A stretch of 64,000 nt of DNA, from contig NW_024055454.1 of NCBI RefSeq assembly GCF_902713615.1, forward strand, positions 62,001 to 126,000, given 5' to 3'. This DNA is from Scyliorhinus canicula (taxonomy: Eukaryota). A model generated the notes under the pieces. It had not been told where the DNA came from, ran no database searches, and worked only from the letters and a program-made list of their open reading frames with translations. Below, one piece after another: positions 5,465 through 63,281 of the stretch (position 1 is the stretch's first letter; the number at the start of each line of letters is the position of its first letter). A program made the translations under genes and the position numbers.

Positions 5465-5512
5465 CTGCAGTCACCGTCACCATGGTGCCTTGTCCCCAGT
5501 AGTCCATGGCGT
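5465..5512 (-). CDS. IGHJ: Immunoglobulin heavy-chain J segment (AMDYWGQGTMVTVTA), phase-1 donor GTAAG
   Basis: WGxG motif, shark-type TMVTVT ending, donor at 5464-5463, preceded by a 23-RSS. Confidence 0.97.
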
Positions 5513-5551
5513 CACAGTGTCACATTCCCTGGGCTGCTCCATACAATAACC
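5513..5551 (-). promoter_or_regulatory. JH 23-RSS
   Basis: Plus strand CACAGTG (5513-5519), 23-bp spacer, ACAATAACC (5543-5551). Confidence 0.95.
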
Positions 5552-5873
5552 GCACTCTGCACAAATAGACAGAAATCCAGCATTATTTTAAATATTCACA
5601 AACCAACGGCAAAGAAAATTCACGATTAATTTTCAGGAAATTATATTAATATTTGTGGATACCGCTCTCTCTTCATAAATGACCGAATGTTTTACATTTC
5701 ACAGATATGGAAATGTTACTGAAAACACCAACTGTGACTAACTAACGACCACCAAATTTCCATATTAATTCTTATTATTTTGTCAGTGCTGGAAATAAAT
5801 AATGCTTCACTGTAAATAAAGTTGGATTGTAAAAGCGAGCACTGAGCCAGCCTCAGTGAATTAGTGCTGAGGG

Positions 5874-5939
5874 GCTTTTTGTATTGACAGTAACTGCTGT
5901 GCCCCAGTTATCACAGTGAGACACAGCGTGTCAAATACT
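5874..5939 (-). other. IGHD: IgH D2 segment (ATAACTGGGG, 5902-5911) flanked by 12/12 RSSs
   Basis: Plus strand GCTTTTTGT-12bp-TGCTGTG-[ccccagttat]-CACAGTG-12bp-TCAAATACT. Confidence 0.9.
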
Positions 5940-6247
5940 GCGGCAGACTGTTAACTAAAATACAGAGATTTAATTCACTGCTCTCCCAAAAAACTAACTC
6001 TGTCTCTTCCAAGGCGAATGGGTGAGTTATTTCAGCTTGTCCTGGTCATTACATTTAGAAGAAGATCGGAACACTTTTAAAACCTCTGTGCACATTTCGC
6101 GAGTCGGTCAACAGTGATAAAGTGGAAGATTTTTATACCTTTTTGCAAACTAATATTACTTCCAAACGTTGTTTTATTTAAAACTCGTTTACTTTAACGT
6201 TCGTGCTGTGACGCTGATCACCAATTTGAACAAGCTCTATTCACTGA

Positions 6248-6325
6248 GGTTTTTGTATGAGGATGTCGCTGTGCACAGCACTGTGACCCACTGTAGTCAC
6301 AGTGACAGACACCCGCACAAAAACT
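6248..6325 (-). other. IGHD: IgH D1 segment (ACTACAGTGGGT, 6286-6297) flanked by 12 (V side) and 22 (D2 side) RSSs
   Basis: Plus strand GGTTTTTGT-22bp-CACTGTG-[acccactgtagt]-CACAGTG-12bp-ACAAAAACT; all three sense frames are open (TTVG, LQW, YSG). Confidence 0.95.
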
Positions 6326-6693
6326 GCACTCACTCTCTGTTCAGTCCTGCCGCTCAATATTCGCTACAAATACAGTTTACTTCTGATCTAATTTACAATT
6401 TATACAGCAGTTTATCAAATCCAATGGACATAGATTTTCCCAAGAATCAGAAATAATAAACCAGGATTATAGCCAAGTCTCTAATTGCTGAAAATGTGAA
6501 CAGTAAATATAAACAGACAAAAGCTCATCCTATTAGATCGATTAGTTTGTTCAGTTTTACTGTTTAATTTACTCTGTGTGAGTTATGTAAGAAGCAGCTT
6601 GTGCAATGACTCTGATCACTGACATTAATATTACATTTGAATCAAGTACTGACCTTCAGGTTAAGGTGCAAGTTGCTGAATTCCCTCTCGAGC

Positions 6694-6732
6694 TGTTCTT
6701 GTGCGGGTCCAGCCCTGGTTCCTCTCGCTGTG
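6694..6732 (-). promoter_or_regulatory. VH 23-RSS
   Basis: Minus strand CACAGCG, 23-bp spacer, ACAAGAACA directly after ...YYCARD. Confidence 0.93.
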
Positions 6733-7037
6733 GTCTCTTGCACAGTAATAGATGGCGGTGTCTTCGGTCTTCAGGCTCCTCATGGCCAAAGAGAAGATGT
6801 TGTTTGAAGTGTCTTTGGACGCAGTGAATCGATCTTTAATGGCTGGGGCGTAGCCGTTGCTGGATGAAGTATAGTAATATACCAACCACTCCAGCCCCTG
6901 TCCGGGAACCTGGCGGACCCAGTTCATGGCGTAGCTGCCAAGATCGAAGCCGCTGGTTTTGCAGGTCAGTGTCAGGGAGCCTCCGGGACGCCCGGTCTCT
7001 GCCTCTGGCTGAGTCAACACAACATCCGACTGGACAC
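6733..7037 (-). CDS. IGHV: IgM-type VH exon, intact ([49 protein letters not shown]...[11 protein letters not shown])
   Basis: Open frame with Cys, Trp (WVRQ), DxAxYYC; acceptor tttttacag. FR1 resembles shark IgM VH as I recall it; the isotype call was not checked by alignment. Confidence 0.95.
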
Positions 7038-7165
7038 CTGTAAAAATATATCAAAAAGCCCGAGGATTAATGCTGGTGAAATGATTGGTGACTCTGGAAC
7101 ATTCCAGAGAGAGACTAACACTGAGACAGTAACAGTGAGAGACTTGGACAATAAAAACTACTCAC

Positions 7166-7211
7166 GGGATAAGAAAGTCAGCAACAAACTGAGAGAAATG
7201 GCCCACCTCAT
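7166..7211 (-). CDS. IGHV: VH leader exon (MRWAISLSLLLTFLS-R; possible upstream in-frame ATG at 7223)
   Basis: 46-nt hydrophobic exon, phase-1 donor GTGAGT, splices in frame to give ...[13 protein letters not shown]. Confidence 0.92.
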
Positions 7212-7300
7212 CCTTCTGGTCATTTGGGGGAAATGGTTGTGTCAGGAACTCAGTGAACAAACCAGCTCCCGGACTGTTGGATTCGGGTCCCAGTGAGCGG

Positions 7301-7310
7301 CATTTAAATA
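7301..7310 (-). promoter_or_regulatory. TATA-like element of the VH promoter, next to a GC-rich block
   Basis: TATTTAAATG on the minus strand ~90 bp upstream of the leader ATG; GC-box-like ggggcgg at ~7322-7328. Confidence 0.5.
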
Positions 7311-10300
7311 CCCGGCAGAAGGGGGCGGCTTTCCAGGCGCCGCCTGTTGATTCCCTGGTGGAGGCGGCGACTGGATCCACGTTCCACCTTCCACACCCCC
7401 AACAGAATGGACTCAGATATTTACTATAGGTTATTATTTAAAAAACGATATTGATCGGTATCGGTATATTTGTTTGGCTGAATGGATTCATTGTAATGTC
7501 TATCCTCATCTGAATGGAAAATGATATTTGAACATCTCTAAGTAAAATCGAATTCCATTATATATTAAGTCTCTTTATTTCTGCACTCCAATATAAAGGG
7601 ATGAACACAGACAGATTAATTTACACTATCAGGGAATAAATTGTCTGTCACTCAGATATGCAAAACTCCGGGACTCTATCCCATTGCAACAATAAAGTAT
7701 AATTTATCAGACGAAATGTAACTAAATGAGGGAATGAATGACGTGATTACATTTGCAGTGCGGATGGCCATCACTGTACAATGTGGGTCTGTCGACAAGA
7801 AGAAACTCCTCACATTATACAATGTCTCTCTTCACATTTCTCGAACTGTCCCTGAGCCTCAGACAGTCCTGTGAACATTAGCGGTAAAAGAAGCCGCTTG
7901 CCTGATAATTCAGCAGTGAGTTGACAGAGAAACATAAAATTCCCATCAGCTTTTGACAGAGAAGTTAATGAATCAGAACACGCGGCGATCAGCAAAGTTA
8001 TCCTTCAGCATCCAAACCATTGCAGCTAATTTTACTGACCACGGCTGTCTAGCATTCACTGGTGTTGGAACACAGGATATCAGGACTTTGTGGCATATTA
8101 CACATATCACAGGAATAAATTGTTTATCTTCCACTGAAGCTGGTCATGAACTGGTAATTTCTCCACTCATTAGCAGCAATGAAAGGGACTTCTAACTAAT
8201 GGAAATCCAGACAAATTAAACTGTACAGAACCACGGTGCTAATCGGATATAAGAGAAGACTCCGTTTAAAGGAGATCAACAACTCGGAGAATATTCCAGG
8301 ATTCCCCGCGAATTCAATGCAGTATTTTAAAACTTTTAATTCATTTTATTTTATTTTTTGTAATTGGAGTCATCTTATTGAACTTGTGGATTGGGGGTCC
8401 ACCAACACCACCACTCCCACTTCATTAGGTTTTTAACAAACGGACTTTAATAACTAGAGTGACCTTTACTCGGAACTTATATAAATTAAATAGCATTAGT
8501 CAATTTACCATTTTCCTATCATGTTTAATCTAAGAGTGAACAGAACATTCACTGAATATATTTATTTAGATGGAACACCATTTAAAACGTTTACTTCATG
8601 TGCGACTAAACATCTATTGTTTGAATGGATAAATCCCATTTAATCCATTCATATTCAGGTTAATCTGTCCCACACAGTATTTGGCAGCAATCCAGCCGCC
8701 TGCAGTCAGGGAGGCTCGAATGTTCAATGTTGTTTACAGGAAGCATCTGGATTTGTTTTTCAGAGATCTGTTAGCTCAGTACTGACCGCTTGGCTGCAAG
8801 CCAACTTCAAACTCTTAACATTGTCAATGAGAACTATTTATAAACAAATCTACCCAGCAACAGTACTGGAGATCATTTATGTTTTAAATTGTGAACCTAT
8901 TTGTACTGTTCCCATCTCTATGGAAAGGATTTGTAGCCCCTCTTAGCAGCAATATCCCGCTGGAGGATCTCTCCCACATCTCATAACATTGTGATGACGG
9001 AAATAAATACAATCAGACTATCAGACAGAGGGTCCATTTGTAACAGACCAACACGTATATTCATGTTTTCCCCCTATATACGTCCAAGGATTGTGGGACT
9101 CAATACAAGACCCTGCCCCTAATTACTCTTGAACTGAGTGGTTTGCTTTGCCAGTTCAGAATGAATGGAAGAGTCAGACATGTTGCTGTCCGACTGGAGC
9201 CTGATGTAGGTGAAGCCAGGGAGAGATGACAGATTTCCTTCATTGGTGAAACAGAGCGGATTTCATGTAATATGTATTCCAGATTATTAAGTGGAACTCA
9301 AATTCTTCCCTCCGACTATGGTGGGATTTGTTCCCGAGCATTTGTACCCGGGCAGTTTTATTACTGGCCCAATAACATTAATGCTGCATCACCATCCACC
9401 CAAAATATAAAGGGATCACTGATTTGATGTAGAGATGAGTGTTAGTTGGATGCCTGAATATTGTGATTGAGGAATCAGTGAATGGGGTTGATGGATGGAT
9501 GGATAGATGGCCCTGAAAGATGCTGTTCTACATTCTCAGTTTTGCGCTTGATGATTTCACAAATTAAAGTTGGTCCTTTATAATTTGTATCGCCTGATAC
9601 ATTCGGTGGCTGAAGCCTTTCTGGGTGAATTCCCTCCCCAGACTATCGGCAAATAACGAGCTAGACGTCAATAAGAGGGAACTGGAGATATTCCTGCGGT
9701 GCTGGTGATCCTTCTCTGCTGATGGCGAATCTTCATCTCAAAACAGAAAGCGGGAACGTGATTACATTGAGGAGGGACGGCTGTAATATTTGGAACATGT
9801 GGCCATTTCGTGTACAATAAGTCACTCAAGATGTCCTCACCCAAATTAATGAAGACAGCAGACTAAAAACATATTAATGTGAAAACAGAAATACTGTGAA
9901 ACTCAGTGGAGAGCTGTAAATGTTGAATTACTTTCCAAAACAGTGTAATAAGAAATTGGGAAGGAAAGATTCATTAACGTCACATTAGGTAAAGGCATTT
10001 TTATTTCTACCGGCACTTTAAATATCATCTCACCCTCCAGTCTGGAGATTCTGTGTGACGATGACGAGATTACTGACCAATACAGCGCAGAGGCTGCTGG
10101 GTAGCTGCACACTCTCCTCGGTGTGGTTTAATTCCATTTCACATTGAATTCCGGTGTAGATGTGACTTCTTGGTGACAGAATGGTCAATGCTATTCAATT
10201 ACGTTTAACTCTAATAAATTATGTTAAACACACAAGAAAAGAATTAGGAGCAGAAATAAGCAATTAAGCCCTTCGAGCCTGCTCCGCCATTCAATCATCG

Positions 10301-16890: not shown

Positions 16891-19800
16891 GTGTTGGCCA
16901 CATGTCGATTAAAGACAATGACCCTTCGTGGAGGGACATGAGATAGAACCAGTTATGAGAAAGACACAGAGAGATAGGATACAGGAAAATTTCTACTAAC
17001 ACACTTGGCATGTCCTTATATTTAGATATTAGAGGGAATATTTCCTAATTATGAACATGGATATCATAATGACATTTTTCTCATATAACCGATGAATAAA
17101 AAAATGTCGAAAAACAAACACTAGCTGGAATCCGTTGATCTATTTGCAATTTTGTCTCTATTTCTGTGCTGTGTTGGTGGGGAAACATTTGTTTTGCTTT
17201 TCTCAGTCCGCAATCTAATCTGGAACTTCTATTTCTGTGTTTATTTACATAAAACCCCCACTGGTCACAATGAAATGTTCATGTCAGCAAAACGAGATAA
17301 ACACAGTCACTTATTGATTAGTTTCAACTGAAAATAGCGGTTTATTTTCAGAATATTGACAGTTGGTTAAATGAATAGAAACTTCCATTAGAACAGATGT
17401 TACTTAATTCAAATAAAACATACTTTAAATAAAGTATTCATTCTGAAAGTTATGATAGCCTCAATTAATAAAGCATCTTTAACCAGCTACTTTTCCACTG
17501 AATGTTAAATTGATTGAAATATTAGCCGATTTAAAGTAAATAAATTGAAACATCAGGCAGAGGATTGATCTGTTGTCACATCAATCTCAGATCTTGCGAC
17601 ATATTACAACCTGCATTTAAAAATGTTAACATTAGGAAAGAGCTTGATTTTGTAAAACGCTTTTCCCGACCTCAGGTCATCCCAACGCCCTTAAAACTCA
17701 CTGAAATATTTTTACTGAATTTAGTCACTGCAGTAATGTTGGAAACAGAGCAGGGCATTTGTGCACAGCAAGCTCCCACAAATGGAGATGTGATAAGTGA
17801 CCAGCTAATTTGTGATTTTAGGTGAAGAACGGACATTGGTCCAAGATACTGGGAAAAGCAGCTCTGCTCTTTAGAATTATATCAGTGAGGTAATCCACCC
17901 GAAATGTGACTCTGGTCCTCTCTCTGCTGATGCTCACTGACCTGCTCAGCAGCCTTTTTTGTTGATTTTGTTTTAGATTTCCAGAATCTGCAGCACTTTG
18001 CACAGTTTTGGATTCATTCTCGCTATATAGCCATCAGTGACACAGTCAGCATTAACTGTCCATCCTGAGAAGCCGGATGTGAACCACGTTTTTAATAAGG
18101 TGCACTTCGAGCGATTTTATTGACATTTGACTTTCTGTAGCATGTTCCGTTGAACTGACTTGCTTGCTCGGCAATATCAGAGATAGTTAACAGTCAACCA
18201 CATCATTGCTGAACTAGAGTCACATATGGGCCAGAGTAAGGAAGGAAGCTTTCTTCTCCTGAAGGATGTTGCTGAACCTGCTGGGCGTTGCAAAAGTTCG
18301 ATAGCTTCATAAGTATTATAAATGACACGTCGATTTTTTTCTGATTGATTAAGTCATTCAATTGAAAGTATCTAGAGCTGCCATAAAACCATAAGATCTA
18401 GGAGCAGAAATTGGCCATTCGGCCCATGTAATATGATCTGCCATTCAATGAGTTCGTGGCAAATCTGCTAAAATCCTCAACTCCACATTTCCACGTCATC
18501 CCCATAACCCTTGATTCCCTTACTGATGAAGAATCTGTCTGTCTCAGCCTTGAACATATTTATTGACCAGGCCAACTCTCTATGGCAAAGAATTCTAGAG
18601 AATCACTACCCTCTGAGAGAAGAAATTCCTCCTCATCCTCGTCTGAAATGAGTGGCACCTTACACTTAGATTGTGCCCTATGGTCCTAGACCCTCCCACA
18701 AGCCGAAACAACCTTTAACATCTACACTGTCAAGTGCCCTGAGAAAACTATAAATATCAGTAACTTCGCCTTTCATTCTTCTAAACTCCTATGCGTGTAG
18801 TCCTAACCTACTTTAGCCCTCCTCATGTCAGTCTCTGTGGTGCAATTGGTCAGCGTGTTTGGCTGTTTACCGCAAGGTTTGTGATTCAAGGCCGGATTCT
18901 TCTTTATTTGCTGACAGACAGAGTACCGATGGGCCGAGGAGCCTCTGTCTGTGCTGTGAAATGCTACCTGCCTTTGAAAATCCCTCCATTCTCGGGAATA
19001 ACCTAAAAAGCCTTCTCAGGACTGTCCCCAAATATCTATCCTTACATAAGGAGACCAAAATCGTTCACAGCATTACAATATGCCCTGGAGGAATTTGCAC
19101 TCCTGTGTCTGGAGTATTAGTTCAGACCTCCAGGTTACCAGTTTTGTAATAATCTTGCGAAACTACCCCTAAGACTGAAATCATCACATCTAAAAGATGG
19201 AACAACTGAACATAATACACTCCTCCTGCATTGGATCACAGGTCTGGATCATGGGCTCAGGTATCTGTTGTGGGAGGTGATATGGATTCCACTGAGACAA
19301 GACTGCTAACCTATCATGGTTTGTATTTTGACATTCTGACATATTGCTCAGTGTATCTAAAGTTCAAACTCTGGGTCCAGTCTTACTTGGGTCAATTTAA
19401 TTTTCAGAGGCTGGTCTTTTATTAGTCTTGGTCTTATTCGGACACAATGGTAATGGTGAATGGGAAGTCCATTGGCTCCATATAAAATATCAGTTATTCC
19501 AAAAATAGCATCTAAATGCAAGCAAGGCAGAAACATATGTACAACCTGATCTTCTCACTGCATCAGCTGCACGGTCAGAGCGGTTGGAAGCTGGGATTGT
19601 TTTCCTTATAACCCAGCAGGTTATGGGAAGGCCTGGTGAAAATGGTCAAAATCGGAATGGTTTTGTTTGATTAGTTAGGAAGAAACTTAATTCACTGGAA
19701 GAAGGGTCAGAAAACAGAGAACACTGATTAATGAGATATTAATTCATTTTCCGCTCTGATTATAAACCGATCAAATTGCAACAGGACTAGACAGGGCGGA

Positions 19801-20424
19801 TGCAGAAAGGATGGTCCCGATGGCCGGCAAAGCTAGAACAAGGTGTCACAGTCTAAGGATACGGGGTAAGCCATTTAGGACTGAGATGAGGAGCAATGTG
19901 TTCACCCTGAGATTTGTGAATCTGTGAATTCTATACAACAGAACGAAGTTGAGTCCAAAGTATTCTATGTTTTCAAGAAGGCGTTAGATAAAGCTCTTGG
20001 GGATCAAAGCTATAAAGGGACCAAATGACAGGGGGGAAAGTGGAAACAGGTTACTGATGTGGATGACCAACCATGATCAGAATGAATAGCGGAGCAGGGA
20101 CAGAATGGTTTACTCCTGCTCTATTTTCTATGTCACTGTATTACGTCAAATCTGTTTCTTCTCAAGTTGAATGAGACTCTGCCTTTATTTATATTAAAGT
20201 AAATCCTGTCCCTGTCTATACTACACTGTTCTGTTTGTGCCACACTCAATTAATATTACACTAAACCATGCACATTATTATATTACATTAAGTTCCGCCT
20301 CTTTTATATTCCACTGGAATGTGTCTCTTTACATCACACCAGGGCCTGTCTCTGTTAATATTATACCGGACCATGTTCCTGTTGTCTGTCTCGATATTAT
20401 AAATTATTTTATATATTTGCTTGT

Positions 20425-21235
20425 TGTGACTCGTGGTGTTCCGCAGGGACCAGTGGTGGGACCTTTGATGTTGGTAGTATATATAAATTATTTTGAGGAA
20501 AATGTAACTGATCTGATTAGTAAGTTTACGGACGACACAAAGGTTGGTAGGGCGAAAGAGAAAATGTTGGAAAATCTCAGCAGGTCTGGCAGCATCTGTA
20601 GGGAGAGAAAAGTGCTGACGTTTCGAGTCCAATGACTCTCTCTCACACAAAGGTTGGTGGAATTGCAGATAGCGATGAGGACTGTCAGAGGACATAGCAG
20701 GATTTAGATCGTTTGGAGACTTGGGTGGAGAGATGGCAGATGGAATTTAATCCGGACAAATGTGAGGTCATGCATTATGAAAGGTCTAATACAGGTGGAA
20801 AATATACAGTGAATGGTAGAACCCTCAAGAGTATTGACAGTCAGAGAGACCTAGGTGTACACGCCCACAGGTCACTCAAAGGGGCAATATTGGTGGAGAA
20901 GGCAGTCAAGAAGGCATACGGCATGCTTGCCTTCATTGGTCGGAGAATAGTGCTTAAAAATTGGCAAGTCATGTTGCAGCTGTATAGAACCTTAGTTAGG
21001 CCACACTTGGAGTATAGTGTTCAATTCTGGTCGCCACACTACCAGAAGGATGTGGAGGCGTTTGAGAGTGTGCAGAAGAGGTTTACCGGAATGTTGCCTG
21101 GTATGGAGGGCATTAGCTATGAGAAGAGGTTGAATAAACTTGGTTTGTTCTGACTGGAACGACGGAGGTTGAGCGGCGACCTGATAGAGGTCTACAAAAT
21201 TATGAGGAGCATAGGCAGAGTGGATCGTCAGAACC
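20425..21235 (+). mobile_element. CR1 LINE RT/3' fragment, present only in duplication copy 1
   Basis: Translation ...GVPQGPVVGPLMLVVYIN...ISKFTDDTKVG... and WQMEFNPDKCEVMH...LYRTLVRPHLEYSVQFWSPH. Confidence 0.9.
20549..20644 (-). mobile_element. Short Penelope-related insertion nested in CR1, 14-bp TSD
   Basis: ACACAAAGGTTGGT duplicated at 20535-20548 and 20645-20658; same family as 40429-40574 and 63200-63320. Confidence 0.75.
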
Positions 21236-22347
21236 TGATGCACTGGCAGTGTTAGACAGAACCGTGTCTCACAGTATCGCCAGATTGGCACCCACAGGAT
21301 AAATATCTGAACAATCATAGAACTCTCATCTGGTTAAGGAGAGCAATTGAAATCACTGCAAAAACGTATTGACCGTTCGTGTCGGTGTGGAAAAAACATT
21401 GTTCAAAATGTTTGCAACTGTAATCAATCAAGACGTAATGCTATCTTCGGAATTAATTGTTTCACTTTGCCATGTCTTCATGCGTCTCGGCCCTGAGCTC
21501 TGGTACGCATTCCACACTCCTCTTTACCTCAATTCCCTTAATAAAAATCATCCCATATAACTTGCCTCGTCGACCAAGCTTTCAATCATCTGACCTAATA
21601 ACTCTTTAGACATATATTAATCCAGACCCTGCAGCAGGAATGACCGAAATAGACCCTACCTCAGTTTAGACTATTCCAGACTCTGAATCAATGGTCACTG
21701 CTCGACGTCCTATATCATTTAAGGTGAATCAAACTTTGTATCAGTAATTTCTGCACTAGAACCTGTCTCGGTTTATGTTAGTGTGGACTATGTATCAGAA
21801 ATCACTGCACTAGATCCAATCTCAGTGGCACTGTTGCTTCACAGTGCCGTGGTCCCAGGTTCGATTCCTGACTTGGGTCACTGTGCGGAGTCTGCACTTT
21901 CTCCCTGTGTTCTGTGTGGGTTTCCTCTGGATGCCCCGCTTTCCTCCCACGTGCCCCGAATGACGTGCTGTTAGGTAACTTTGACTTTCTGAGTTCTCCC
22001 TCTGTGTACCCGAACAGGCGCCTGAATGCTGCGACGAGTAGCTTTTGACAGTAGCTTAATTGCAGTGTTAATGTAAGCCTACTTGTGGCAATAAAGGTTT
22101 TTGGATTAGTTTAGGTTAATCTCCACCCTGTATGAGTGATAATCGTTTTAGACCTTGTCATAGAGCCATGGAGTCTTAGAGGTTTACAATACAGAATGAC
22201 GCCCTTCCATCCATCGTATCGGCGATGGCAATCAAGCACCTATCTATTCTAAGATCGTCCACAGATGGTCTTCATACCATAAAACTATAAGACACAAGAG
22301 CAGAACTAGACCATTAGGCCCATCGAGTGTGCTCCTCATTCAATCAT

Positions 22348-22565: not shown

Positions 22566-24829
22566 CTCCTCATTCAATCATGACTTATGTTTCTAATCGC
22601 CCATCTCCTGTTATCTCCCCATAACCCCTGATCCCCTTATTAATCAAGAAACTATCTATGTCTGTCAGACTGGTTAGATATAGGGAAAGATCCTATGGCA
22701 CTGCCATATCAAATCCTCACCACTCTGTGCAGCTCAGGATAGATACAGAGTAAAATTTTCTCTACAGTTCTCATTAAGCACTACAAGGTAATTGAATGCT
22801 CCAACCACATTTTAGAAGAAAACGCTCTCTATGTATTCCAATTCATTGGATTAGATCCATTTAGTTGGAAGCCAATGGGGTGTGATCGGGCTGAGAGAAT
22901 ATATTGGGCACATGTGACTTCAATTTGTCGATTACCGACAATGACCCATCGTGGAGAGACATGAGACAGAACCAATTGGGAGAAAGACACCGATATCAGA
23001 TACATGAAAACTCTACGAACACATTTGGCATGTCATAATATTCGAGATTAAAGGGAAACTTTCCTCATTCTGAACATAGATATCATGATGACATTTTTCT
23101 CATATAACTGATGAAGAAACACATGTCCAAAAACAATTACTACTTGAATCCGTTAATCTATTTACATCTTCATCTCTATTTCTGTGCTGTGTCGGCGGGG
23201 AAATAGTTGTTTTGTTTTTGTCAGTCTACAATCTAAACTGGGCCTTCTATTTCTGTGTTTATTTACATAAACATCTCACTGGCACAATGTCAGCAAAACG
23301 AGATAAACACAGCCACTTATTGATTAGTTTCAACTCAAAATAGCGGATTATTTTAAGAATATTAACAGTCTATTAAAATGTATAGAACCCTCCATTAGAA
23401 CAGATGTTACTTAATTGAATTAAAGAATACAGTTGAATTAAGTATTAATTCTGAAAGTTCTGATGTCTCAATTAATAAAGCATCTTTAACCAGGCTGTTA
23501 TTCCACTGAATGCTAATTTGATTGAAATATTAACCGATTTAAAGTAGATAAATTAAAACATCAGGCAGAGGAGTGACCTATAGTCACATTAATCTCAGAT
23601 CTTTCAAAATCTTACAACCTGCATTTTAAAATGTTAACATTTGGAAAGAGCTTGCTTTTGTGAAACGCTTTACCCGACCTCAGGTCATCCCAACGCCCTG
23701 AAAACTCACTGATGTATTTTTGCTGAATTTAGTCACTGCTGTAATGTTGGAAACAGAGCAGGGAATTTGTGCACAGCAAGATCCCACAACCTGAAATGTG
23801 ATCAGTGACCAACCAATCTGTGATTTATGTTCAAGAACGGACATTGGTCGAGGATACTGGGAAATCAGCTCTACTCTTTAGAATTATGTAAATGAGGCAA
23901 TCCACTAGAAATGTGAATCTGTTTCTCTCTCTGCTGATGCTCACTGACCTGCTGAGCAGCCTTTTTTATTTTGTTTTTGTTTTAGATTTCCGGATTCTGC
24001 AGCACTTTGCACTATTTTTAACATTCATTCCCGGCCTATGACCCTCACTGACAAAGTCAGCATTAACTGTCCATCCTGTGAAGCCGGATGAGAACCACCT
24101 TTTAGATAAGGTGCACTTTGCACAGTTGAATTTACATTTGACTTTATGTAGCAGATTCTCTTCGACTGACTGGCTTGCTCGGTAATATCAGAGGTAGTTA
24201 AGCGTCAACCACATCATTGCTGAACTAGTTACATATAGGCCAGACAGGGGAAGGCGGGAAGATTTATTTTCCTGAAGGACATTGGTGAACCTGCTGAGCT
24301 TTGGGAAATTTCAAGAGCTTCATGAGTATTATGAATGACACGACGATTTTTATTGCTGATTTATTAATTCATTCAATTATAAAACCATAAGATGTAGGAG
24401 CAGAAGTTGGCCATTCGACCCATGCACCTTCTCTGGACTGCCTCCAAAATATCTATCCTTAGGTAAGGAGACCAAAACTGCTCACATCATTGCAATATGC
24501 CCTGGTGGAATGTGTACTGCCTCTGGAGTAATAGTTCAGGCCTCCAGATTACCAGTCCAGCAACAATATTGCGAAGCAGCCCTAAGGCTGTAATATAATC
24601 ACATCTAAAAGATGGAACAACTGAAACATAAAATACTCCTGCATTTGATCACAGGCTGTCGTGAGAGGTGATATTGATTCTCACGAAACAAGACTATTGA
24701 CCTATCATGCTTTGCATTTTGACATTACATTCTGAGATATTGCTCAGTGTATCTAAAGTTCTAATTCTGGGTGCAGCCTTACATGGGTCAATTTAATTTT
24801 AAGAGGCTAGTCTTTTATTAGTCTTGTGA

Positions 24830-43580: not shown

Positions 43581-43599
43581 ACCTTGATAATGAAACAAC

Positions 43600-46500: not shown

Positions 46501-47838
46501 CGGCCACCCTCAAGATATGGGGGCAGTGGAGGCGACACAGGGGTGAAATGGGAGGTCTGTTGGCGGCGCCAATAAGAGGGAACCATAGATTCATCCCGGG
46601 GAACATCGACGGGGGATTTCAGAGCTGGTACAGGGTGGGCATACGGCAGCTGAAGGACTTGTTTATAGAGGGGAGGTTTGCGAGCCTGGGAGGGCTGGAG
46701 GAGAAGTTTGAGCTCCCCCCGGGAAACATGTTCAGATATTTACAAGTGAAGGCATTTGCTAGGCGGCAGGTGGAGGGGTTCCCCCTGCTCCCCAGTAAGG
46801 GGGCGAGTGATAGGGTGCTCTCGGGGGTCTGGGTCGGAGGGGGGAAGATATCAGACATCTACAAGATAATGCAGGAGGCGGAAGAAGCATCAGGGGAGGA
46901 GCTGAAAGCCAAGTGGGAAGTTGGAGCTGGGAGAGCAGATAGAAGACGGGACGTGGGCGGATGCACTGGAGAAGGTCAATTCTTCCTCCTCGTGTGCGAG
47001 GCTGAGCCTCATTCAATTTAAGGTGCTGCATAGAGCTCACATGACGGGGACAAGGATGAGCCGGTTCTTTGGGGGTGAGGACAGGTGTGTCAGATGTCTG
47101 GGAGGCCCAGCGAACCATGTGCATATGTTCTGGGCATGTCCGGTGCTGGAAGGGTTCTGGAAGGGGGTGGCAAGGGCGGTGTCGAAGGTGGTGGGGTCCA
47201 GGGTCAAACCAGGATGGGGGCTTGCGATCTTTGGGGTTGGGGTAGAACCGGGGGTACAGGAGGCCAGGGAGGCCGGAATACTGGCCTTTGCGTCCCTAGT
47301 GGCTCGACGAAGGATATTAATTCAATGGAAGGACGCGAGGCCTCCAAGCGTTGAAACTTGGATTAACGATATGGCTAGCTATATTCAGCTAGAAAGGATC
47401 AAATTTGCCCTGAGAGGGTCGGTACAGGGATTCTCCAGGCGGTGGCAACCTTTCCTTGACTTTTTAGATCAGAGATAGGCGTACGGGGTCGTGGCAGCAG
47501 CAACCGGGGGGGGGGGGGAGGGGGGGGGGGGGAGGGGAGAGGGGGGAGGGGAGGGGGGGAGGGGAGGGGAAGGGGGGGCAGCAATGGTCGTGGGGGGACA
47601 TGCACGACTGTAACGCGGGCAAGTCTGCTCGCTGCTCATGTCTGAAACTGTAGGCTGCCTTGTTTGTTAAGTTGTTGCTTGGGGGGCGGGGGGGGGGGGG
47701 GGAGGACTGGTGCGCGCGAGAGGGCGGGCGAGGGAGGGATATTTGCCTAGAGGGATTGTGTTGTAAATAATTTAAAAATTAGTAGGGGTAAATGTCTGTA
47801 TGGAAAAACTCTTTCAATAAAAATTATTTAAAAAAAAA
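43600..47838 (+). mobile_element. 5'-truncated young L1-clade LINE; ORF2 (APE endonuclease + RT) 43682-47478 with two +1 frameshifts
   Basis: ITWNVRGLN, LQETH, GGDFN, SRID, SDH, YRPISLLNVDAK, RQGCPLSP, YADD motifs; G-rich 3' UTR, AATAAA and poly(A); perfect 14-bp TSD GATAATGAAACAAC (43586-43599, 47839-47852). Confidence 0.97.
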
Positions 47839-48931: not shown

Positions 48932-48983
48932 AATAATTCAGGGCTAACTCGCTCTGTTCAAATCCACCATCAGTTCTGTGGAC

Positions 48984-49498
48984 ATGTTGGGAGTTACTTT
49001 TTACTCATTCCTCTCAATTGCGGCTCTCTTAGCCTGTAATAGCCCAAGTTACACAACTTTCACGTTATACTGACATAGTAATCTTCCCTTTAACTGTTTA
49101 TTCACTATATTTACAAAACATGCCGGTTCCTTGATAACATTAATATAACAGAATGATTTTTTTAAATCTCTTTGTTTCTAAATTTCTGCAGGTGTTAGTG
49201 GTGTAGATTCAATCTCACGGGAACCGGTTACACTGACACCGTTTGAAGGAGATTCGGTGACAGTTAACTACAACTATCCGACCATTGCTGCTTCATATTC
49301 CTTACAGCTGTACCGCCTGGATCGGGAGAAAGCCCCCATCTTCTTGATGCACATTCCTAATTCCGGAGCAGTTTCCAGAGCAGTGGGTGCGGGGTATCGA
49401 TTTTCTGCATCTCTGGATATTTCGAAAAGTGAGGGGAAATTCACCATCCGGGAGCTGCGGCTGTCTGACAGCGCGGTGTATTACTGCGGACGTAAAGA
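48984..49498 (+). CDS. TRAV/TRDV: TCR alpha/delta-type V gene, open frame but non-canonical (leader 48984-49035, V exon 49192-49498); first Cys is Tyr and core Trp is Leu
   Basis: Leader MLGVTFYSFLSIAALLA with phase-1 GT; exon ...FEGDSVTVNYNY...LQLYR...LSDSAVYYCGRK; 23-RSS CACAGTG(49499-49505)-23-ACAGAACCA(49529-49537). Confidence 0.88.
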
Positions 49499-49724
49499 CA
49501 CAGTGACAGCAACCAGAGGGAGCCTCGTACAGAACCAACTCTGTGGTGAAACAGAGGGAATTGCGGGCAGGAGAGAGTGTGTGTGGGAGGGGGGGGGGGG
49601 GGGGGGCGAGTGGGGGGGGGGGGGGGCGCGGTTGGGACATGGACTTTCCAAAATTCGCAGCAGATTCCTCTGTCTTCAAATAAATCCAAAAGGTTAACAA
49701 GCCGAGAGGAACAGGTACAACTTT

Positions 49725-50028: not shown

Positions 50029-50954
50029 GTTTGGGAAAGGTTTCCTTTGTTCATTTTACATTGAATATATTTTGAGCATAATGTAAAGATGTGCTTGGAG
50101 AATCTATGCCACTTTGTAAATTGAAGATATTACGAAATAAATGCTGAGCTAAAGATGTGATATTGCCTTCCAGCCGTTAAAACAGGTGAACATAACAGGT
50201 AACATAGCAGGTATATAACACTGGGAAGTATAGAAACGCAGAACAAGCTTTGTACGTGCATAAAGATGTATGCGATGTGTTTGGATTTCCCAAACGCGTC
50301 TTGTGATTATAGCAAACTAGCTGGTGCTCTTTTCAATGAGGCGTTTGTATTCAGCTGATTTTCCTGTGCCTGAAACACACCTAGCCTGTCTTTAGAGGCC
50401 ACTTGCTTATTAATCATTGTTCATCAGATTCAAATCATGACCTGAAAATAATCTGTTTGTGTTTGTTTATGATAAGAATTCTTAGTTGTATTATGCGGAA
50501 GGAATTTAACATTGTGAGCTTTATAATCAGGGTACTGTAGTTAATAGAATGTTCCTCAGCTGGCGGACTTCAGTTTACACTATTGACGATATGTCAAAGC
50601 CAATATTATTTGTTCCTTGTCAAGAGCTCTTTCTGAAACATCGAATCAGGAACATACCAAGTTCCAGACCGTCTGCAGCGTTTTGTATTCTCAATTTTCG
50701 TGGCGGGTTCCTAGAGATGCCCAAACAAACTGCCTCAAATTCCTGCCTCGCACAATGGATGGAATAATCAGATGGAATCGGTCATTGATATGAACTATGT
50801 TAGATGGCGTTTATGTGTATTGTGTTCGGAGTCTGTGCTCACACTGAGTCAGTATCTGAGCCGTTGTTATAAACAACCTTCAACAGACAGCAGCTGTGAC
50901 CCAGAAACCTGCGGCAGTTTTTATTCGAGATTTTCCCTCGTTCCCATCACTGTG

Positions 50955-51594
50955 AGATTCTGTGCACAGTAATAGACCGCGGTGTCAGACAGCCGCATCT
51001 CCAAGATGGTCAATCGGTACAACTTGTCTGCCTGCTGGACTGCATCAGAAAACCGGTCCTGAGCGAAATCCGCCGTCAATACAGCACCGCGGCCCGTGTG
51101 CCTTGGATTCATGTCACATTACACTCACCCCCATGATCTGGCCTGGGTTTGCGAAACCCTCCCAACTGTCCTGGCCTGAGACAATTCACATCTCTTTAAC
51201 CTGTGATTACCCCTCTCTCCAGTCGCACCGTCTGGACCTGTAAAGGCGTAATTACAGGCAAAGACTGGCATTCAAAGTATTGTCTTGCATCGCTGACTTT
51301 GTCTGTATATATACTTCTTGAACATACCTCTTCATTCACCTGATGAAGGAGCAGTGCTCCGAAAGCTAGTGATTTGAATCAAACCTGTTGGACGTTAACC
51401 TGGTGATGTAAGACTTCTTACTGTGTGCCTCCGGACCGCAAACTCGGGCAGTCTGTCTGGGTATTGACGGTCCCAGAATAAATAATAAGCATCCTCGGTA
51501 TAGGTACAGGTTGAAGTGACATCTCCTCTCTCTGTCTGTGTGAGTGAGGATTCTCTCCGAGTCACAGAATCTCCATCGGTCAGACATTGAGCAC
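50955..51594 (-). pseudogene. TRAV/TRDV: Inverted TCR V pseudogene split by a 319-bp insertion; splice acceptor appears mutated AG>AC
   Basis: Removing 51104-51422 plus one TSD copy restores DGDSVTRRESSLTQTERGDVTSTCTYTEDAYYLFWDRQYPDRLPEFAVRRHTGRGAVLTADFAQDRFSDAVQQADKLYRLTILEMRLSDTAVYYCAQN; intact 23-RSS CACAGTG(50954-50948)-23-ATAAAAACT(50924-50916). Confidence 0.9.
51104..51422 (+). mobile_element. Penelope-like pseudo-LTR inside the V exon, 8-bp TSD, with hammerhead motif
   Basis: GTGTGCCT at 51096-51103 and 51423-51430; homologous to 33780-34057; CTGATGA(51340-51346)-A-GGAGC agt GCTCC-GAAA(51361-51364)-GC-TA. Confidence 0.88.
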
Positions 51595-53624: not shown

Positions 53625-54069
53625 ATGTTCTCCTCACATTGCTTCATGGTGATTCTCATCATCCTGCCCAGTGAGTCAATATTTACTATAATATTCAATA
53701 TCACACATGCACATGTTCCATATGTTATGTTCACTCCCAGACGTTTCAAACATTGTTTGTCTTGTTACAGGAACAAATGGCAAAGAAGCAGTGTTCCAGG
53801 ATCGATCTGAATTAAAGGTTCCGGAAGGACAGAACGTAACACTGGATTGTAGATACTCGACAGCTGCTCTTCGAACTCTGTTCTGGTACATCCAGTATCC
53901 CGGGAAAGCTCCAAAATATTTAATGACAATATATAGCTCTGGGGAAGAATTCTCCAAATTTACCAGCCAGGTTCTTGGCGGTTTTGCATAAAGAAAACAC
54001 AACGGTTCCTTTAACTATCACCGGGGCTCTTCTCTCCGACTGCGCCGTGTATTTCTGTGCCATAGAGCC
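53625..54069 (+). pseudogene. TRAV/TRDV: TCR alpha/delta-type V gene with a single +1 frameshift (leader 53625-53670, V exon 53771-54069)
   Basis: Leader MFSSHCFMVILIILP; ...VPEGQNVTLDCRY...LFWYIQYPGKAPKYL...; deleting one A at ~53956-53958 restores ...FSNLPARFLAVLHKENTTVPLTITGALLSDCAVYFCAIE; RSS CACACTG(54070-54076)-23-ACAATAACC(54100-54108). Confidence 0.88.
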
Positions 54070-54131
54070 CACACTGCACAGAGATATAGCAGCTGCCGTA
54101 CAATAACCCCACACTGAGAGTTCCAGTTGGT

Positions 54132-58705: not shown

Positions 58706-58771
58706 CCTTCAAACATGGGGATGATGAAGTTCCGTGATGGCATCGTCAAAACCAATAGATGTCGTGGTCTG

Positions 58772-58781
58772 AGTGATGTCA
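58772..58781 (+). promoter_or_regulatory. TCR V promoter decamer (CRE-like) AGTGATGTCA
   Basis: Exact match to AGTGAYRTCA, 123 bp upstream of the ATG; CCAAT at ~58752. Confidence 0.6.
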
Positions 58782-58894
58782 CAATGGGCCTGGTCCCCTG
58801 CAGTGTGTGGGTGGAACATTGAGCTAAACAGAGCCCGGGTTCCCTCTCTCCTCTCAGTCTCTGGCTCATTCCATTCCCATTCACTCAGTCAGAC

Positions 58895-59586
58895 ATGTTT
58901 CTGTTAATACTGGCGGCGTTGTTGGACGGTAAGTAATGGATAATATTCATCAAGCCAGATTAGAGGGTGATAGATTGCAATAACATTGAATAGAATTAAC
59001 GATCAGAAATATCCACATGATGAGGGAGTTTATTTTCCGCAAACTCACAGATAAAGGAAAATAAATGAAAATCGCTTATTGTCGCAAGTAGGCTTCAAAT
59101 AAAGTTACTGTGAGAAGCCCCTAGACGCCACATTCCAGCGCCTGTTCAGGGAGGCTGGTACGGGAATTGAACCGTGCTGCTGGCCTGTCTTGGTCTGCTT
59201 TCAAAGCCAGCGATTTAGCCCTGTGCTAAACCAGCCGCTAATTTAGGTGAATTATGTTTAAACTATTGATATTTCATTTCTCTCCCTTTACAGGCGGGCT
59301 AAGCGCAGATCCAGTAACTCAATCACCGGTGACAAACACCGTGTCAGAAGGGGGTTCGGTGCGGCTGGATTGTGAATATGCAGACTCGAATATGCTGTAC
59401 ATGCAATGGTATCAGCAGAAAGCGGCACAGCCACCAATCTGGATTATTACCAATGCATTTGCTCTGAAGAAAGATGAAGTTTCAGGACGATATCTGGCGG
59501 CTGCTGACAAGTCTAAACAGAACGGTTACCTCAATATAAGCGGCCTCAGTGTGGGTGACGGGGCGGTCTATTACTGTGCAGTGAGG
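58895..59586 (+). CDS. TRAV/TRDV: Intact TCR alpha/delta-type V gene (leader 58895-58928, V exon 59294-59586)
   Basis: MFLLILAALLD-GGLSA-DPVTQSPV...LDCEY...MQWYQQK...DGAVYYCAVR; GT/AG intact; RSS CACAGCG(59587-59593)-23-ACAAAAACC(59617-59625). Confidence 0.93.
59059..59237 (-). mobile_element. tRNA-derived SINE in the leader intron of the 58.9-kb V
   Basis: Family of 1763-1945; absent from the paralogous intron at 62111-62279. Confidence 0.88.
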
Positions 59587-60141
59587 CACAGCGTTAGAGA
59601 GCAGCTGGTGCCCCGTACAAAAACCTCAGCGAGTATTCACAGCTCCACTGAATCTGCTTTCCTGCTCCTGTCTGCGGGAATTGTTTAATCCCGGATTCAC
59701 GAACACAGTCAGTTCTATTTATCAGACAGTTATATTTGTGTCTCCGCTCTTCTGCGGGTGAACAGATGAGCAATTTGGAAATCACGCGACTCATTTCCAT
59801 GCCGCAATGTACATGGTAAATTGAAACGTGGAATACCCGGGTACCAGCAGCGGTAATAACAGCTCTCAGATGTCGAAATAATACAGCCGGAAATTATACT
59901 TTGCTCTTCCAGAACCGTTAACTCAGATGAGCCCAATCCCACTGAGCCTGCCCCTGGAATAAAACAGAGACTGTGTCAAACTCTGCTGTTGTATTTAACA
60001 CAGGAAATTCAGAATAAGAAATTCAACAGGACATCACAGAGCAACACGAGTATTATTATCATGTAGGACCATGGTGTCTGCTTTGGGCTTCATTAGAAAA
60101 TCGATTCTTCGATCGAAAACACATCCATTGCCTGCTGCTAG

Positions 60142-60420: not shown

Positions 60421-60944
60421 AGATCCTTCCTCTTCATGCGGTCAGACAGCTGTGCTGTACTTCGGTCGTTAACAAGATGTACTTATGTATTTACCTGTAT
60501 GCGAGGCATAGTAAGATCATCTATACCTTTCTGCTGCACGGATTCCGTCCCATCAGATGAAACATGAACGGTGCAGGGTGCCCGGATGCTGACTGTATCG
60601 GTCAGGATCTATTGTTTTGACTGAACTGTTGTGTGACGTCACTGTCCTCTTCGACCCTTATTTCAGCCTCGCCGCTGTTCTCCTGGGTCCTGGTGGCTCC
60701 AGTCTGACAGAAACCAAAAGAAAATATAAAATTCAGCATCAACCTCATATTGACCAACATAACAGCCACCCCCATTATTATTATTATTATTATTATTTAA
60801 TTAACAGTAATATCAGGTTACACAGTGAGGGGAGAATGGAGAGTTTGCAATGAGTGAAATACCGAGAAGTGAGATGATGTTGAGGAGATCGGAGAGGCGA
60901 TTCCCGCGATAATTCCTGAATTAGATGCTGTCAGGAAATTACCT

Positions 60945-61205
60945 GTCCGAGCAGAAATACAGATTCAGGAGCCACTGCACGGCTGCTCAAACCAATGACA
61001 GGAATCGAGCAGCGACAGCAATGTCTAGAATATCATAATGGTGTTCGAGCCAGAGAAACAAACGGAAACTGTGACTGGGGACACCGCAGATTCAAAGCTG
61101 ATACAAAATGTGCGGCGGTTATCGGCTGCTGTCGCAAGTGAGGGAGGGAAACAGCGACAGTTGACCATCCTGCACCTGCTCACTGCTCAAGTCACTGAGA
61201 ACAAT
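60945..61205 (-). pseudogene. Possible inverted V relic, paralog of 57258-57536
   Basis: Minus strand IVLSDLSSEQVQDG...LYFCSD; shares cacctgctcactgctcaagt and ggacaccgcagattc with the 57-kb copy. Confidence 0.4.
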
Positions 61206-61274
61206 ATAGAGGGAAGACACTTCCCTCCAACGAGAAGGGATCTGATACAACTGACCCTCCCTGCCCCTATTTCG

Positions 61275-61597
61275 TACAATCATAGGATCTACAGTGCTGA
61301 AGCAGGCCACCCGGCCCATCGAGTTCGCAATGGCCCCCGGAAAAAGCATTCCACCCAAGCCCACGCCTCCACTTCATCGCAGCAACCTAACACAACCTTT
61401 GTGGGCATTTAGCATGGCAAATGCACCTAACCTGCACATCTTTGAATTCTGGGGGAAACCAGAGCACCCAGAAGAAACCGACGCAGACAGGGGGAGAACG
61501 TGCAGACCCCGCACAGACAGTGACGCAGCCGGGAATAGAACCTGGGACCCTGAAGCTGTGAATCCATTGTGCTAATCACTATGCTACCGTGCCGCCC
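61275..61597 (-). mobile_element. HE1-type SINE
   Basis: Minus strand gggcggcacggtagcatagtgattagcacaatggattcacagcttcagggtccc head. Confidence 0.88.
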
Positions 61598-61870
61598 ACA
61601 TACGTACACGACGCTGTCAGAAATCATTGTGCTCCTGATCGTTAGCTCGGTCGTCTTGTCCTTTGAATATTTGACATACCCAGGATTGAGACAGAAGATT
61701 CCAGCGATGGTTTCCGGAGATTTAGCATAGTTTTCAGGCATAAACATTAACAGTAACAAAGACAGTATATAAACAGGTCCAATTTAGATTTTTGGGTCAC
61801 ATTCGAATATTGGTATGTTTTGCAGCAAACCCTGAACACACTCACTAGGAAAATTCGATTTAACACAATT

Positions 61871-61888
61871 TGCCAGCAGAGGGCGCCG
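61871..61888 (+). promoter_or_regulatory. CTCF-binding consensus 206 bp upstream of a V ATG
   Basis: TGCCAGCAGAGGGCGCCG, a canonical CTCF core. Confidence 0.72.
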
Positions 61889-61953
61889 AATTCAACCACG
61901 GGCGTCATAAACCCACGTGATGTTTTCTTTGAAACCTGTTTGGCTGGGGGGCC

Positions 61954-61963
61954 AGTGAGGTCA
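61954..61963 (+). promoter_or_regulatory. Decamer variant AGTGAGGTCA
   Basis: 123 bp upstream of the ATG at 62077, the same offset as in the paralog. Confidence 0.5.
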
Positions 61964-62076
61964 CAAACCACCCCCCCCCCCCTTCCTGCACTGTAACGCC
62001 TCCGCCTCCTCAATGAGTTGAGCAGACCCGGGGCTCCCTCCCTGCTTCACAATCTCTGAGAGAGATTCAGTCTGAC

Positions 62077-62572
62077 ATGTTTCTGATAATACTGGCGGCG
62101 CTGTGGCACGGTAAGTCCTGGATAATAAACATCGAGGCAGATTAGCATATTAATACAGATCGATGGCAATATAATTGCGCTCGAAAATATCGATATGATG
62201 CGCAGTTGGGAGGTTTCACAAACTCTCTCAGATACAGGCAAATTTGCATCAGTTGATATTTAATCCTCTACCTTCACAGGCGGACTGTGCGCAGATCCAG
62301 TAACTCAGTTACCGGTGATAATAACCGCATCGGAAGGAGATTCGGTGCTGTTGAATTGTGACGATACAGACAAGAATATGGACTTCATGCTATGGTATCA
62401 GCAGAAACCGGCACAACAACCGAGATGGATCATCACTAACACTCTAGCATTGAAGAAAGAAACAGTTTCAGGACGATATTTGGCGGTTGCTGACAAGTCT
62501 AAACAGAAAGGTTCCCTCAATATAAGCGGCCTCAGTTTGGAGGACGAGGCGGTCTATTACTGTGCAGTGAGG
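62077..62572 (+). CDS. TRAV/TRDV: Intact TCR alpha/delta-type V gene (leader 62077-62110, V exon 62280-62572)
   Basis: MFLIILAALWH-GGLCA-DPVTQLPV...LNCDD...MLWYQQK...DEAVYYCAVR; RSS CACAGCG(62573-62579)-23-ACAAAAACT(62603-62611); 66/93 aa identical to the 58.9-kb V by hand count. Confidence 0.93.
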
Positions 62573-63281
62573 CACAGCGTTAGAGAGCAGCTCGAGCACC
62601 GTACAAAAACTGCAGCGAGTCTGTACAGCTCCACTAAGGTTCCTTCTGCCCGAAGCATTTGATCCCCGCTGTTCGAACGCTGTTAGGTGTATTTACCAGG
62701 CTTTGTTTAATGCTTCCACCCTTGTGCCGATCAACAAAGGAGCCGTTTGGAGAATGTTGAGGCTTATCATGCTGCGATATATACAGTAACATTTATCACG
62801 GAATATCCACCAAGCTGCACAGGGAAGATTTCACATGTGGAGTTAGTTTAGCCGGAAAGTACGGCTAGCCTTAACTCAGCTGAGCCCAGGAACACCGACT
62901 CCTCGGCACCCGGTATTTAACGAAATGCAGAATGGATCAGGGGGACGCGGTGGCAAAGTGGTATTGTCACTGGACTAGCAATGCAGACACCGAGAGTAAT
63001 GATATGGGGTTGACTCTTAACTGCCCCCTCATGAGCGATTCGCGATGAACCAAAAAAAAATTCCTGCGATACTTAACACATGAAATGTACAATAGCAGAG
63101 ATTCACCTCACAACACGGCTAGCACTATCAGTCTGTGACATGGGGAGCAGATGATGCCGGGTTTAGGCTTGAATACAAATCGACTTGCCGATCGATAATG
63201 TAAATAAAAGCAAATTATTGCTGGAATCTGAAAACCTGGACAATCCCAGCAGGTCTGGCAGCATCTGTGGAGGGAGAAGGG

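Follow-up and report, generated by a model that had tools for sequence, protein, structure and literature searches.

An intact IgM-type VH-D1-D2-JH minicluster lying 42 kb from TCR alpha/delta-type V segments in Scyliorhinus canicula

A 64,000 nt stretch of the Scyliorhinus canicula assembly (GCF_902713615.1, contig NW_024055454.1, positions 62,001 to 126,000; here called the window) very probably carries a conventional, working elasmobranch germline IgM-type minicluster (VH-D1-D2-JH) that lies inside an antigen receptor complex, among TCR alpha/delta-type V segments. Its anatomy and the types of its V segments were read directly, and within-cluster V-D-J joints and J-to-C splicing were observed in RNA. 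A preliminary description of this DNA could not match such an arrangement to a description, but linkage of IgH and TCR alpha/delta in sharks and rays has been described from four elasmobranch assemblies by Flajnik et al. 2025 (PMC12227049), who offered this proximity as the basis of Ig-TCR-delta rearrangements. The locus is what would be expected within the shark antigen-receptor complex and no new kind of locus, and no concept is changed by it, since the 2025 study had already reported the linkage and used it to account for chimeras. It provides a base-level example of the published complex, with an intact, apparently expressed IgM-type minicluster 42 kb from TCR alpha/delta V segments and every RSS mapped.

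Anatomy of the IgH minicluster

The coordinates of all features are given in Table 1. An intact, unrearranged germline IgH minicluster occupies the minus strand at 7223-5465. It is made up of a leader, a V exon, two D segments (D1 and D2) and a JH, and its six RSSs are arranged as V-23 / 12-D1-22 / 12-D2-12 / 23-J. The open frame of VH retains Cys22, Trp36 and the YYCAR motif, and its CDR1 (GFDLGSYA) and CDR2 (YYYTSSSNG) read as they had before. Open reading frame, splice sites and all six RSSs are intact, which confirms the complete, unrearranged minus-strand cluster that was first reported. The gaps between coding ends measure 435, 374 and 389 bp, against a segment spacing of about 330-410 bp given at that time.

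Table 1. Positions of features in the window (position 1 is its first letter)
Feature	Position	Strand	Basis or remark
First 5.4 kb of JH-to-C intron	1-5464	-	sequence
JH AMDYWGQGTMVTVTA, splice donor gtaag after 5465	5512-5465	-	sequence
JH 23-RSS	5551-5513	-	RSS scan
D2 12-RSSs, both flanks	5939-5912 and 5901-5874	-	RSS scan
D2 ATAACTGGGG	5911-5902	-	whole unit with RSSs 5939-5874
D1 3' 22-RSS	6285-6248	-	RSS scan
D1 ACTACAGTGGGT	6297-6286	-	whole unit with RSSs 6325-6248
D1 5' 12-RSS	6325-6298	-	RSS scan
VH 23-RSS, CACAGCG-23-ACAAGAACA	6732-6694	-	RSS scan
VH exon, IgM-type, intact open frame	7037-6733	-	sequence
VH leader intron, GT..AG	7165-7038	-	sequence and RNA
VH leader exon, ATG at 7223	7223-7166	-	sequence
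VH promoter TATA box TATTTAAAT	7310-7302	-	sequence
Assembly gap in spacer	35342-35893	.	left flank LINE 3' tail, right flank SINE-like repeat
L1-like LINE, endonuclease and reverse transcriptase	43529-47475	+	spacer
V49, whole element	48984-49537	+	leader 48984-49035, V exon 49192-49498, 23-RSS 49499-49537
V51 pseudogene, frameshifts	50916-51580	-	23-RSS 50954-50916
V53, TCR alpha-like	53771-54108	+	23-RSS 54070-54108
V59, intact TCR alpha/delta-type	58895-59625	+	leader 58895-58928, V exon 59294-59586
V59 23-RSS, CACAGCG-23-ACAAAAACC	59587-59625	+	RSS scan
V remnant (FR3, ...DSVVYVCG) fused to SINE	61592-61756	-	sequence
V62, intact TCR alpha/delta-type	62077-62611	+	leader 62077-62110, V exon 62280-62572, 23-RSS 62573-62611

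At the threshold chosen for the RSS scan, 128 kb of strand yielded 15 RSS-like hits. The 1.3 kb of the minicluster holds six of these, all of them at segment borders, where chance alone would put about 0.2 (Poisson P ~5e-8). Searches of the window against Rfam at gathering scores gave no match, and an octamer was not found near the VH promoter. The single ATGCAAAT in the window, a number below chance expectation, lies in the leader intron of V62.

The cluster closely resembles the IgM miniloci of horned and nurse sharks, in which a single VH, a pair of D segments and a single JH lie within 2 kb (PMC2435157). In the nurse shark minilocus described by Malecek et al. 2008 (PMC2435157), segments are about 400 bp apart (374-435 bp here) and C-mu1 follows several kb downstream; the 23 / 12-22 / 12-12 / 23 RSS pattern and rearrangement within the cluster are also common to both. 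By the 12/23 rule, RAG would join segments within the cluster (V-23 to 12-D1, D1-22 to 12-D2, and D2-12 to 23-J), and transcription would be driven from the promoter with the TATA box at 7310-7302. The leader intron would then be removed and JH spliced to the first constant exon.

Transcripts and the constant region

RNA contigs from four runs were compared with the window, a minimum of 95% identity being required. In contigs of all four, the leader intron (7165-7038) has been spliced out (joint 7034/7163, cut +3, minus-strand GT..AG), and in one run (X10) the 5' end of an RNA is found at 7279 (31 nt past the TATA box), where the loose end resembles a template-switch cDNA adaptor. More than 12 distinct joints link the end of V (6726-6739) to the start of J (5501-5512), with inserted letters at the junctions that contain D1 (ACTACAGTGGGT) or D2 (AACTGGGG) letters, and the loose ends seen where V stops (its 3' end) carry D1-like letters. 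At the JH donor (5465), loose ends in three runs continue into one and the same exon, starting ATPSPPTLYS. This pattern of a spliced leader, V-N/D-J joints and JH-to-C splicing is that of ordinary antibody use. Since the cutoff was set at 95% identity and shark IgM clusters are multicopy, some or all of this RNA may come from paralogues, but it probably derives from the present copy rather than from a near-identical one.

The V-D-D-J cluster had previously been described as IgM-type, and comparison with other sharks supports this. VH is 86% identical to chiPu_0018445 of the bamboo shark Chiloscyllium punctatum and 81% identical to HV01 of the horned shark (Heterodontus), both within the IgM-type VH of sharks. 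Next to the closest V of the bamboo shark, on its downstream side, is a gene of 468 residues, the size of IgM, in which C1-set domains are repeated. The exon joined to JH in RNA starts with ATPSPPTLYS, which would be a C-mu1-like start (a literature search for this string found nothing). These three points speak against the cluster being instead of the IgW (IgD-like) class, or feeding IgW constant exons, which is improbable. The nearest annotated proteins are from Scyliorhinus torazame and C. punctatum.

A scan for C-domain motifs detected no constant-domain exon in the window, including the 5.4 kb downstream of JH. The constant region served by JH is probably C-mu, with its exons lying to the left of the window. 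The distance from JH to C exceeds 5.4 kb, compared to 6.3-6.8 kb in nurse shark (PMC2435157) and more than 9 kb for the J-to-C intron of the bamboo-shark homologue. When the bamboo-shark and whale-shark loci were searched, no C exon was found within 10 kb of J. A TG/AG-rich, low-complexity array occupies positions 1-1600, inside the JH-to-C intron.

TCR alpha/delta-type V elements

Six TCR alpha/delta-type V elements are present between 49 and 62.6 kb, and were earlier presented as a TCR V array. V elements are indeed found there, but most are pseudogenes: two of the six are intact (V59 and V62, plus-strand elements that are 72% identical to each other) and four are decayed. V49 has an open frame with intact splice sites and RSS, yet Cys23 is changed to Tyr and Trp41 to Leu, while V53 is interrupted by one frameshift and a stop near 53960-53990. 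In all five elements with a surviving RSS, the spacer is 23 bp.

Searches of PDB sequences with VH and V59 returned multi-domain scFv chains as top matches, among which TCR and Ig types were indistinguishable, and the V elements were therefore typed by fold and Atlas searches. Every one of the best 18 Swiss-Prot matches of V59 by Foldseek is a human TRAV or TRAV/DV (model pLDDT 67), and the Atlas clusters closest to it are those of TVA and TCR alpha/delta variable, in agreement with the TCR alpha/delta type first assigned to the right-hand V genes. A homologue search with V59 gave four matches, none of them named, and one with a piece of V53 gave no match. The V59 and V62 elements were also considered as part of a light-chain cluster, a reading ruled out by the lack of J or C segments within 3 kb and by the TRAV fold matches. 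Because they carry 23-RSSs and have no J or C nearby, the right-hand V elements appear to be of the translocon type; D, J and C segments of TCR were not detected anywhere in the window. The elements would represent a partly decayed stretch of a TCR alpha/delta V region, transcribed oppositely to the minicluster, and four of the six do face away from VH, as had been noted for most of them.

Linkage of the two gene sets

The distance from the ATG of VH to that of V49 is 41.8 kb on one scaffold, across the gap at 35342-35893, and includes this gap at a length that is an estimate; it bears out the approximately 42 kb first reported between IgH and the TCR V genes, and places IgH physically close to TCR V, as in the antigen receptor complex. 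The 42 kb spacer is rich in transposons (LINE and SINE material) and has no other gene; a scan for V- and C-domain motifs together with tblastn found no further Ig or TCR exons between 8 and 48 kb. The gap is clear of all features and leaves reading frames unaffected. The layout is confirmed as real in this assembly, in which the linkage of IgH to TCR V depends on a single scaffold join.

The two sides of the gap are probably truly adjacent. It is very unlikely that the juxtaposition is a scaffolding artefact, with the gap joining unrelated IgH and TCR V contigs, or joining them in the wrong orientation. The gap is bordered by dispersed repeats on either side (the tail of a LINE and an element resembling a SINE), which are typical places for mis-joins, but the gap length (552) is an estimate and not a fixed placeholder, suggesting that spanning data were available, and the same kind of linkage has been published in four elasmobranch assemblies (PMC12227049).

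Like the antigen receptor complex (PMC12227049), the present locus has a complete IgH cluster adjoining TCR alpha/delta-type V exons. The text of that study is without orientations or RSS geometry, whereas in the present locus the IgH cluster can be seen to diverge from the intact TCR V genes; a further difference from that complex is that the local TCR V elements are mostly pseudogenes. The syntenic markers of the complex, PSMB5 and the other isotypes (IgW, IgNAR and UrIg2), fall outside the window.

Geometry of possible Ig-TCR rearrangements

The preliminary description had proposed the cluster as a cis source of Ig-TCR chimeras. Direct support did not emerge from the RNA, which holds within-cluster V-D-J joints and JH-to-constant splicing only; no joint or loose end leads to a TCR partner in the contigs of the four runs, a weak test made on contigs and not on raw reads from thymus. 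RSS geometry does permit cis chimeras by inversion. Since the orientation of VH is away from the TCR V genes, its 23-RSS would pair by inversion with the 12-RSS of a D-delta (or J-alpha) of TCR situated on the right, an event that would invert the whole interval and put VH upstream of D-J-C delta. The reciprocal joining of V59 or V62 to the 12-RSS of IgH D1 or D2 is also geometrically possible, via an inversion of about 53 kb. Spacers are compatible in either case, with 23-RSSs on VH, V59 and V62 and 5' 12-RSSs on D1 and D2, and the inversions should yield correctly oriented coding joints.

In nurse shark, rearrangements of IgM and IgW V to TCR-delta are documented and have been ascribed to close linkage (PMC12227049, PMC5931798). 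Most shark thymocytes have partly rearranged IgH miniloci, indicating that RAG reaches IgH in cells of the T lineage (PMC2435157). Against a role as cis donor stand the absence of TCR partners in the RNA contigs, the absence of D-delta, J-delta and C-delta from the window, and the confinement of B-cell rearrangement to one minilocus (PMC2435157). On balance, a role as cis donor in chimera formation is unlikely for this cluster. Also unlikely is a wider proposal, in which a single recombination unit comprises both the IgM cluster and the TCR V genes divergent from it, is present in this genome in several copies, and is used in cis by inversion in thymocytes (VH to D-delta, and possibly V59 or V62 to IgH D1/D2-JH); if true, 'trans' Ig-TCR chimeras would be cis products of a co-amplified module. 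The mapped RSSs allow the design of exact primers that would show whether Ig-TCR-delta chimeras in sharks arise in cis, by inversion, or in trans.

Inverted V segments that are used by inversional joining include TRDV3 and TRBV30 of mammals and many mouse V-kappa segments. As with these, VH would be opposite in transcriptional orientation to its potential D/J partners, and joining would invert the interval, the signal joint being kept on the chromosome. It differs from them in that inversional use of VH is hypothetical and the interval would be far larger than for TRDV3 or TRBV30. The conventional minicluster may also be compared with TAILV of nurse shark and VH-delta of frogs, birds, monotremes and coelacanth, in which an IgH-type V likewise lies near TCR alpha/delta V segments, with a 23-RSS capable of pairing with D-delta. 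TAILV and VH-delta reside in TCR alpha/delta loci as single V segments that lack D, J or C of their own and are used with the D-J-C of TCR-delta; the present VH, in contrast, is accompanied by a D1, D2 and JH belonging to the same cluster and occurs in VDJ-C RNA of Ig type, which places it outside that group.

A germline IgH minicluster

The minus strand from 5465 to 7310 is a textbook germline shark heavy-chain minicluster, the segments of which are listed in the table. In a consensus scan, recombination signals (RSS) were found at each segment border, in the order V-23, 12-D1-22, 12-D2-12 and 23-J (numbers are spacer lengths), and the heptamer CAC is kept in all six. These six are among 15 RSS-like matches in the window, and about 0.2 would be expected within the 1.3 kb of the cluster (P ~5e-8). 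The layout agrees with that of nurse-shark miniloci, where segments lie ~400 bp apart and C-mu1 follows several kb on (PMC2435157). The complete germline V-D-D-J cluster of the preliminary description is borne out by segments, splice sites and six RSSs on the minus strand, and the CDR sequences reported there were correct on re-reading.

Annotated features of the window
Feature	Position	Strand	Details
TATA box	7310-7302	-	TATTTAAAT
VH start codon and leader exon	ATG at 7223	-	58 nt
Leader intron	7165-7038	-	128 nt, GT..AG
V exon	end at 6733	-	305 nt; last residues YYCARD
D1	6297-6286	-	ACTACAGTGGGT
D2	5911-5902	-	ATAACTGGGG
JH	5512-5465	-	AMDYWGQGTMVTVTA; gtaag donor
Tandem segmental duplication	17125-21822 and 23143-27619		period ~6 kb; 78-89% identity
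78-bp tandem repeat	39396-39750		4.5 copies, 95% matching
L1-like LINE, nearly full-length	43529-47475	+	endonuclease PF03372, reverse transcriptase PF00078
V49		+	splice sites and RSS kept; Cys23 to Tyr, Trp41 to Leu
V51		-	frameshifted
V53		+	one frameshift and a stop
V59		+	complete gene: 34-nt leader exon, intron, V exon, 23-RSS
FR3 remnant	61592-61756	-	
V62		+	complete gene: 34-nt leader exon, intron, V exon, 23-RSS

Identity of the V exon is 86% with a V of Chiloscyllium punctatum, 83-85% with two V genes of Scyliorhinus torazame and 81% with horned-shark HV01 (Swiss-Prot), an IgM VH. Downstream of the Chiloscyllium punctatum V lies a gene of 468 residues with repeated C1-set domains, as long as a four-domain mu chain, and the J-to-C intron of this bamboo-shark locus is longer than 9 kb. 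No C-domain exon was found in the 5.4 kb 3' of JH within the window. That the cluster belongs instead to IgW is distinctly unlikely. Positions 1-1600, within the presumed JH-to-C intron, are a TG/AG-rich low-complexity array with many degenerate repeats of 14-40 bp and a plus-strand GC skew of +0.40. Mammalian switch regions have a G-rich non-template strand, whereas the array is C/A-rich on the coding (minus) strand.

Probable rearrangement and expression of the cluster

Conspecific RNA contigs of four runs were aligned to 5300-7400 at 95% identity or more, a threshold at which paralogues may contribute, as shark IgM clusters are multicopy. The leader intron is spliced out in all four runs. 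More than 12 distinct joints between the V end (6726-6739) and JH (5501-5512) were detected in runs X9 and X10, with 9-28 inserted letters that, in the minus-strand reading, hold the core of D1 (ACTACAGTGGGT) or D2 (AACTGGGG). These are ordinary VDDJ rearrangements with junctional diversity. The JH donor (5465) leads, in three of the runs, into one common exon with the translation ATPSPPTLYS, presumably the beginning of shark C-mu1. In X10, a loose end at 7279 resembles a template-switch adaptor, which places the 5' end of an mRNA 31 nt past the TATA box.

A GT..AG joint between 6654 and 5554 on the minus strand, present in contigs of X9 and X16, indicates a spliced germline (unrearranged) transcript. 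It reads through the V RSS, omits D1 and D2, and restarts just upstream of the JH RSS.

TCR-type V elements

Motif, RSS and tblastn scans gave six V elements in the right-hand part of the window, named by their kb position apart from an FR3 remnant. The two complete genes, V59 and V62, are 72% identical and lie 3.0 kb apart. All 18 best matches of a V59 model (pLDDT 67) among Swiss-Prot structures were human TRAV or TRAV/DV, and its closest ESM Atlas clusters were TVA and 'T-cell receptor alpha/delta variable'; a piece of V53 also fell in TVA clusters. Light-chain clusters were ruled out, no J or C being nearby, and for the same reason the elements are best described as translocon-type TCR V genes. 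The term 'TCR alpha/delta V array' used previously is fair as to receptor type, but only two of the six elements are intact. Most of them do face away from VH, as had been stated (four of six, including both intact genes).

Gene model P0059 of Scyliorhinus torazame treats 58726-58894, the ~170 bp 5' of the V59 start codon, as coding (MKFRDGIVKTNR...), and this match shows that the V promoter region is conserved between species. A poly-G tract of 42 nt (49585-49626) starts 48 bp past the V49 RSS.

Linkage and the antigen receptor complex

The linkage, distance and relative orientation of the IgH cluster and the TCR V elements rest on the only N run in the window (35342-35893, 552 letters), which lies between a LINE open-frame 3' tail on the left and a SINE-like dispersed repeat on the right. 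A mis-join of the two sides at this point is very unlikely. Continuity is favoured indirectly by the gap length, which is an estimate and not a fixed placeholder, and by a like linkage published in four other elasmobranch assemblies (PMC12227049). The IgH cluster (up to 7.3 kb) and the TCR-type V elements (from 49.0 kb) both lie clear of the gap, so that reading frames are unaffected by it.

Arrangements of this kind are already known. Flajnik et al. described an antigen receptor complex in elasmobranchs, with IgH clusters near TCR alpha/delta V genes, in which every V(D)JC cluster stays together (PMC12227049), and the earlier view that the layout matched no description no longer holds. We regard the present cluster as probably an ordinary IgM-type minicluster within such a complex, rearranging internally and expressed as an antibody heavy chain. 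The presence of D, D and J segments in the cluster itself sets its VH apart from the TAILV and VH-delta type of element.

Chimeras of Ig and TCR-delta are documented in the nurse shark (PMC5931798), and most shark thymocytes have partly rearranged IgH miniloci (PMC2435157). The preliminary description saw in this VH a possible cis source of such chimeras, and the geometry would permit it. VH is on the minus strand and the TCR D-J-C segments presumably lie on the plus strand further right, so a reaction between the VH 23-RSS and a D-delta 12-RSS would invert the whole interval, giving a VH-D-delta coding joint in correct orientation and retaining a signal joint in the chromosome. The reverse case, V59 or V62 joined to IgH D1 or D2, would require a 53-kb inversion. 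Among the joints and loose ends of the contigs (four runs, at least 95% identity) no TCR partner was found, contigs being no proof of absence, and neither a VH-D-delta nor a V59/V62-IgH product was seen. The observation underlying the proposal is confirmed, and its interpretation finds support in part; a contribution of this copy in cis is unlikely. The locus provides a precisely annotated example for which specific primers make the cis-versus-trans question testable.

The spacer

No other genes were found between 7.3 and 49 kb, and Rfam gave no match. The L1-like LINE has a GC content of 0.55-0.58 and a frame break between its two ORF pieces, and is followed by a poly-G/GGGGA tract (47506-47578). 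LINE reverse-transcriptase fragments lie inside the 6-kb tandem duplication (17-28 kb), and further LINE fragments and SINE copies occur in the spacer. Across the window, the motif CACAGTA-22/23-ACAATAAGC, which resembles an RSS, occurs on the minus strand in each of three copies of a SINE-like dispersed element (1782-1819, 36802-36839 and 59074-59112), the last copy being within the V59 leader intron.
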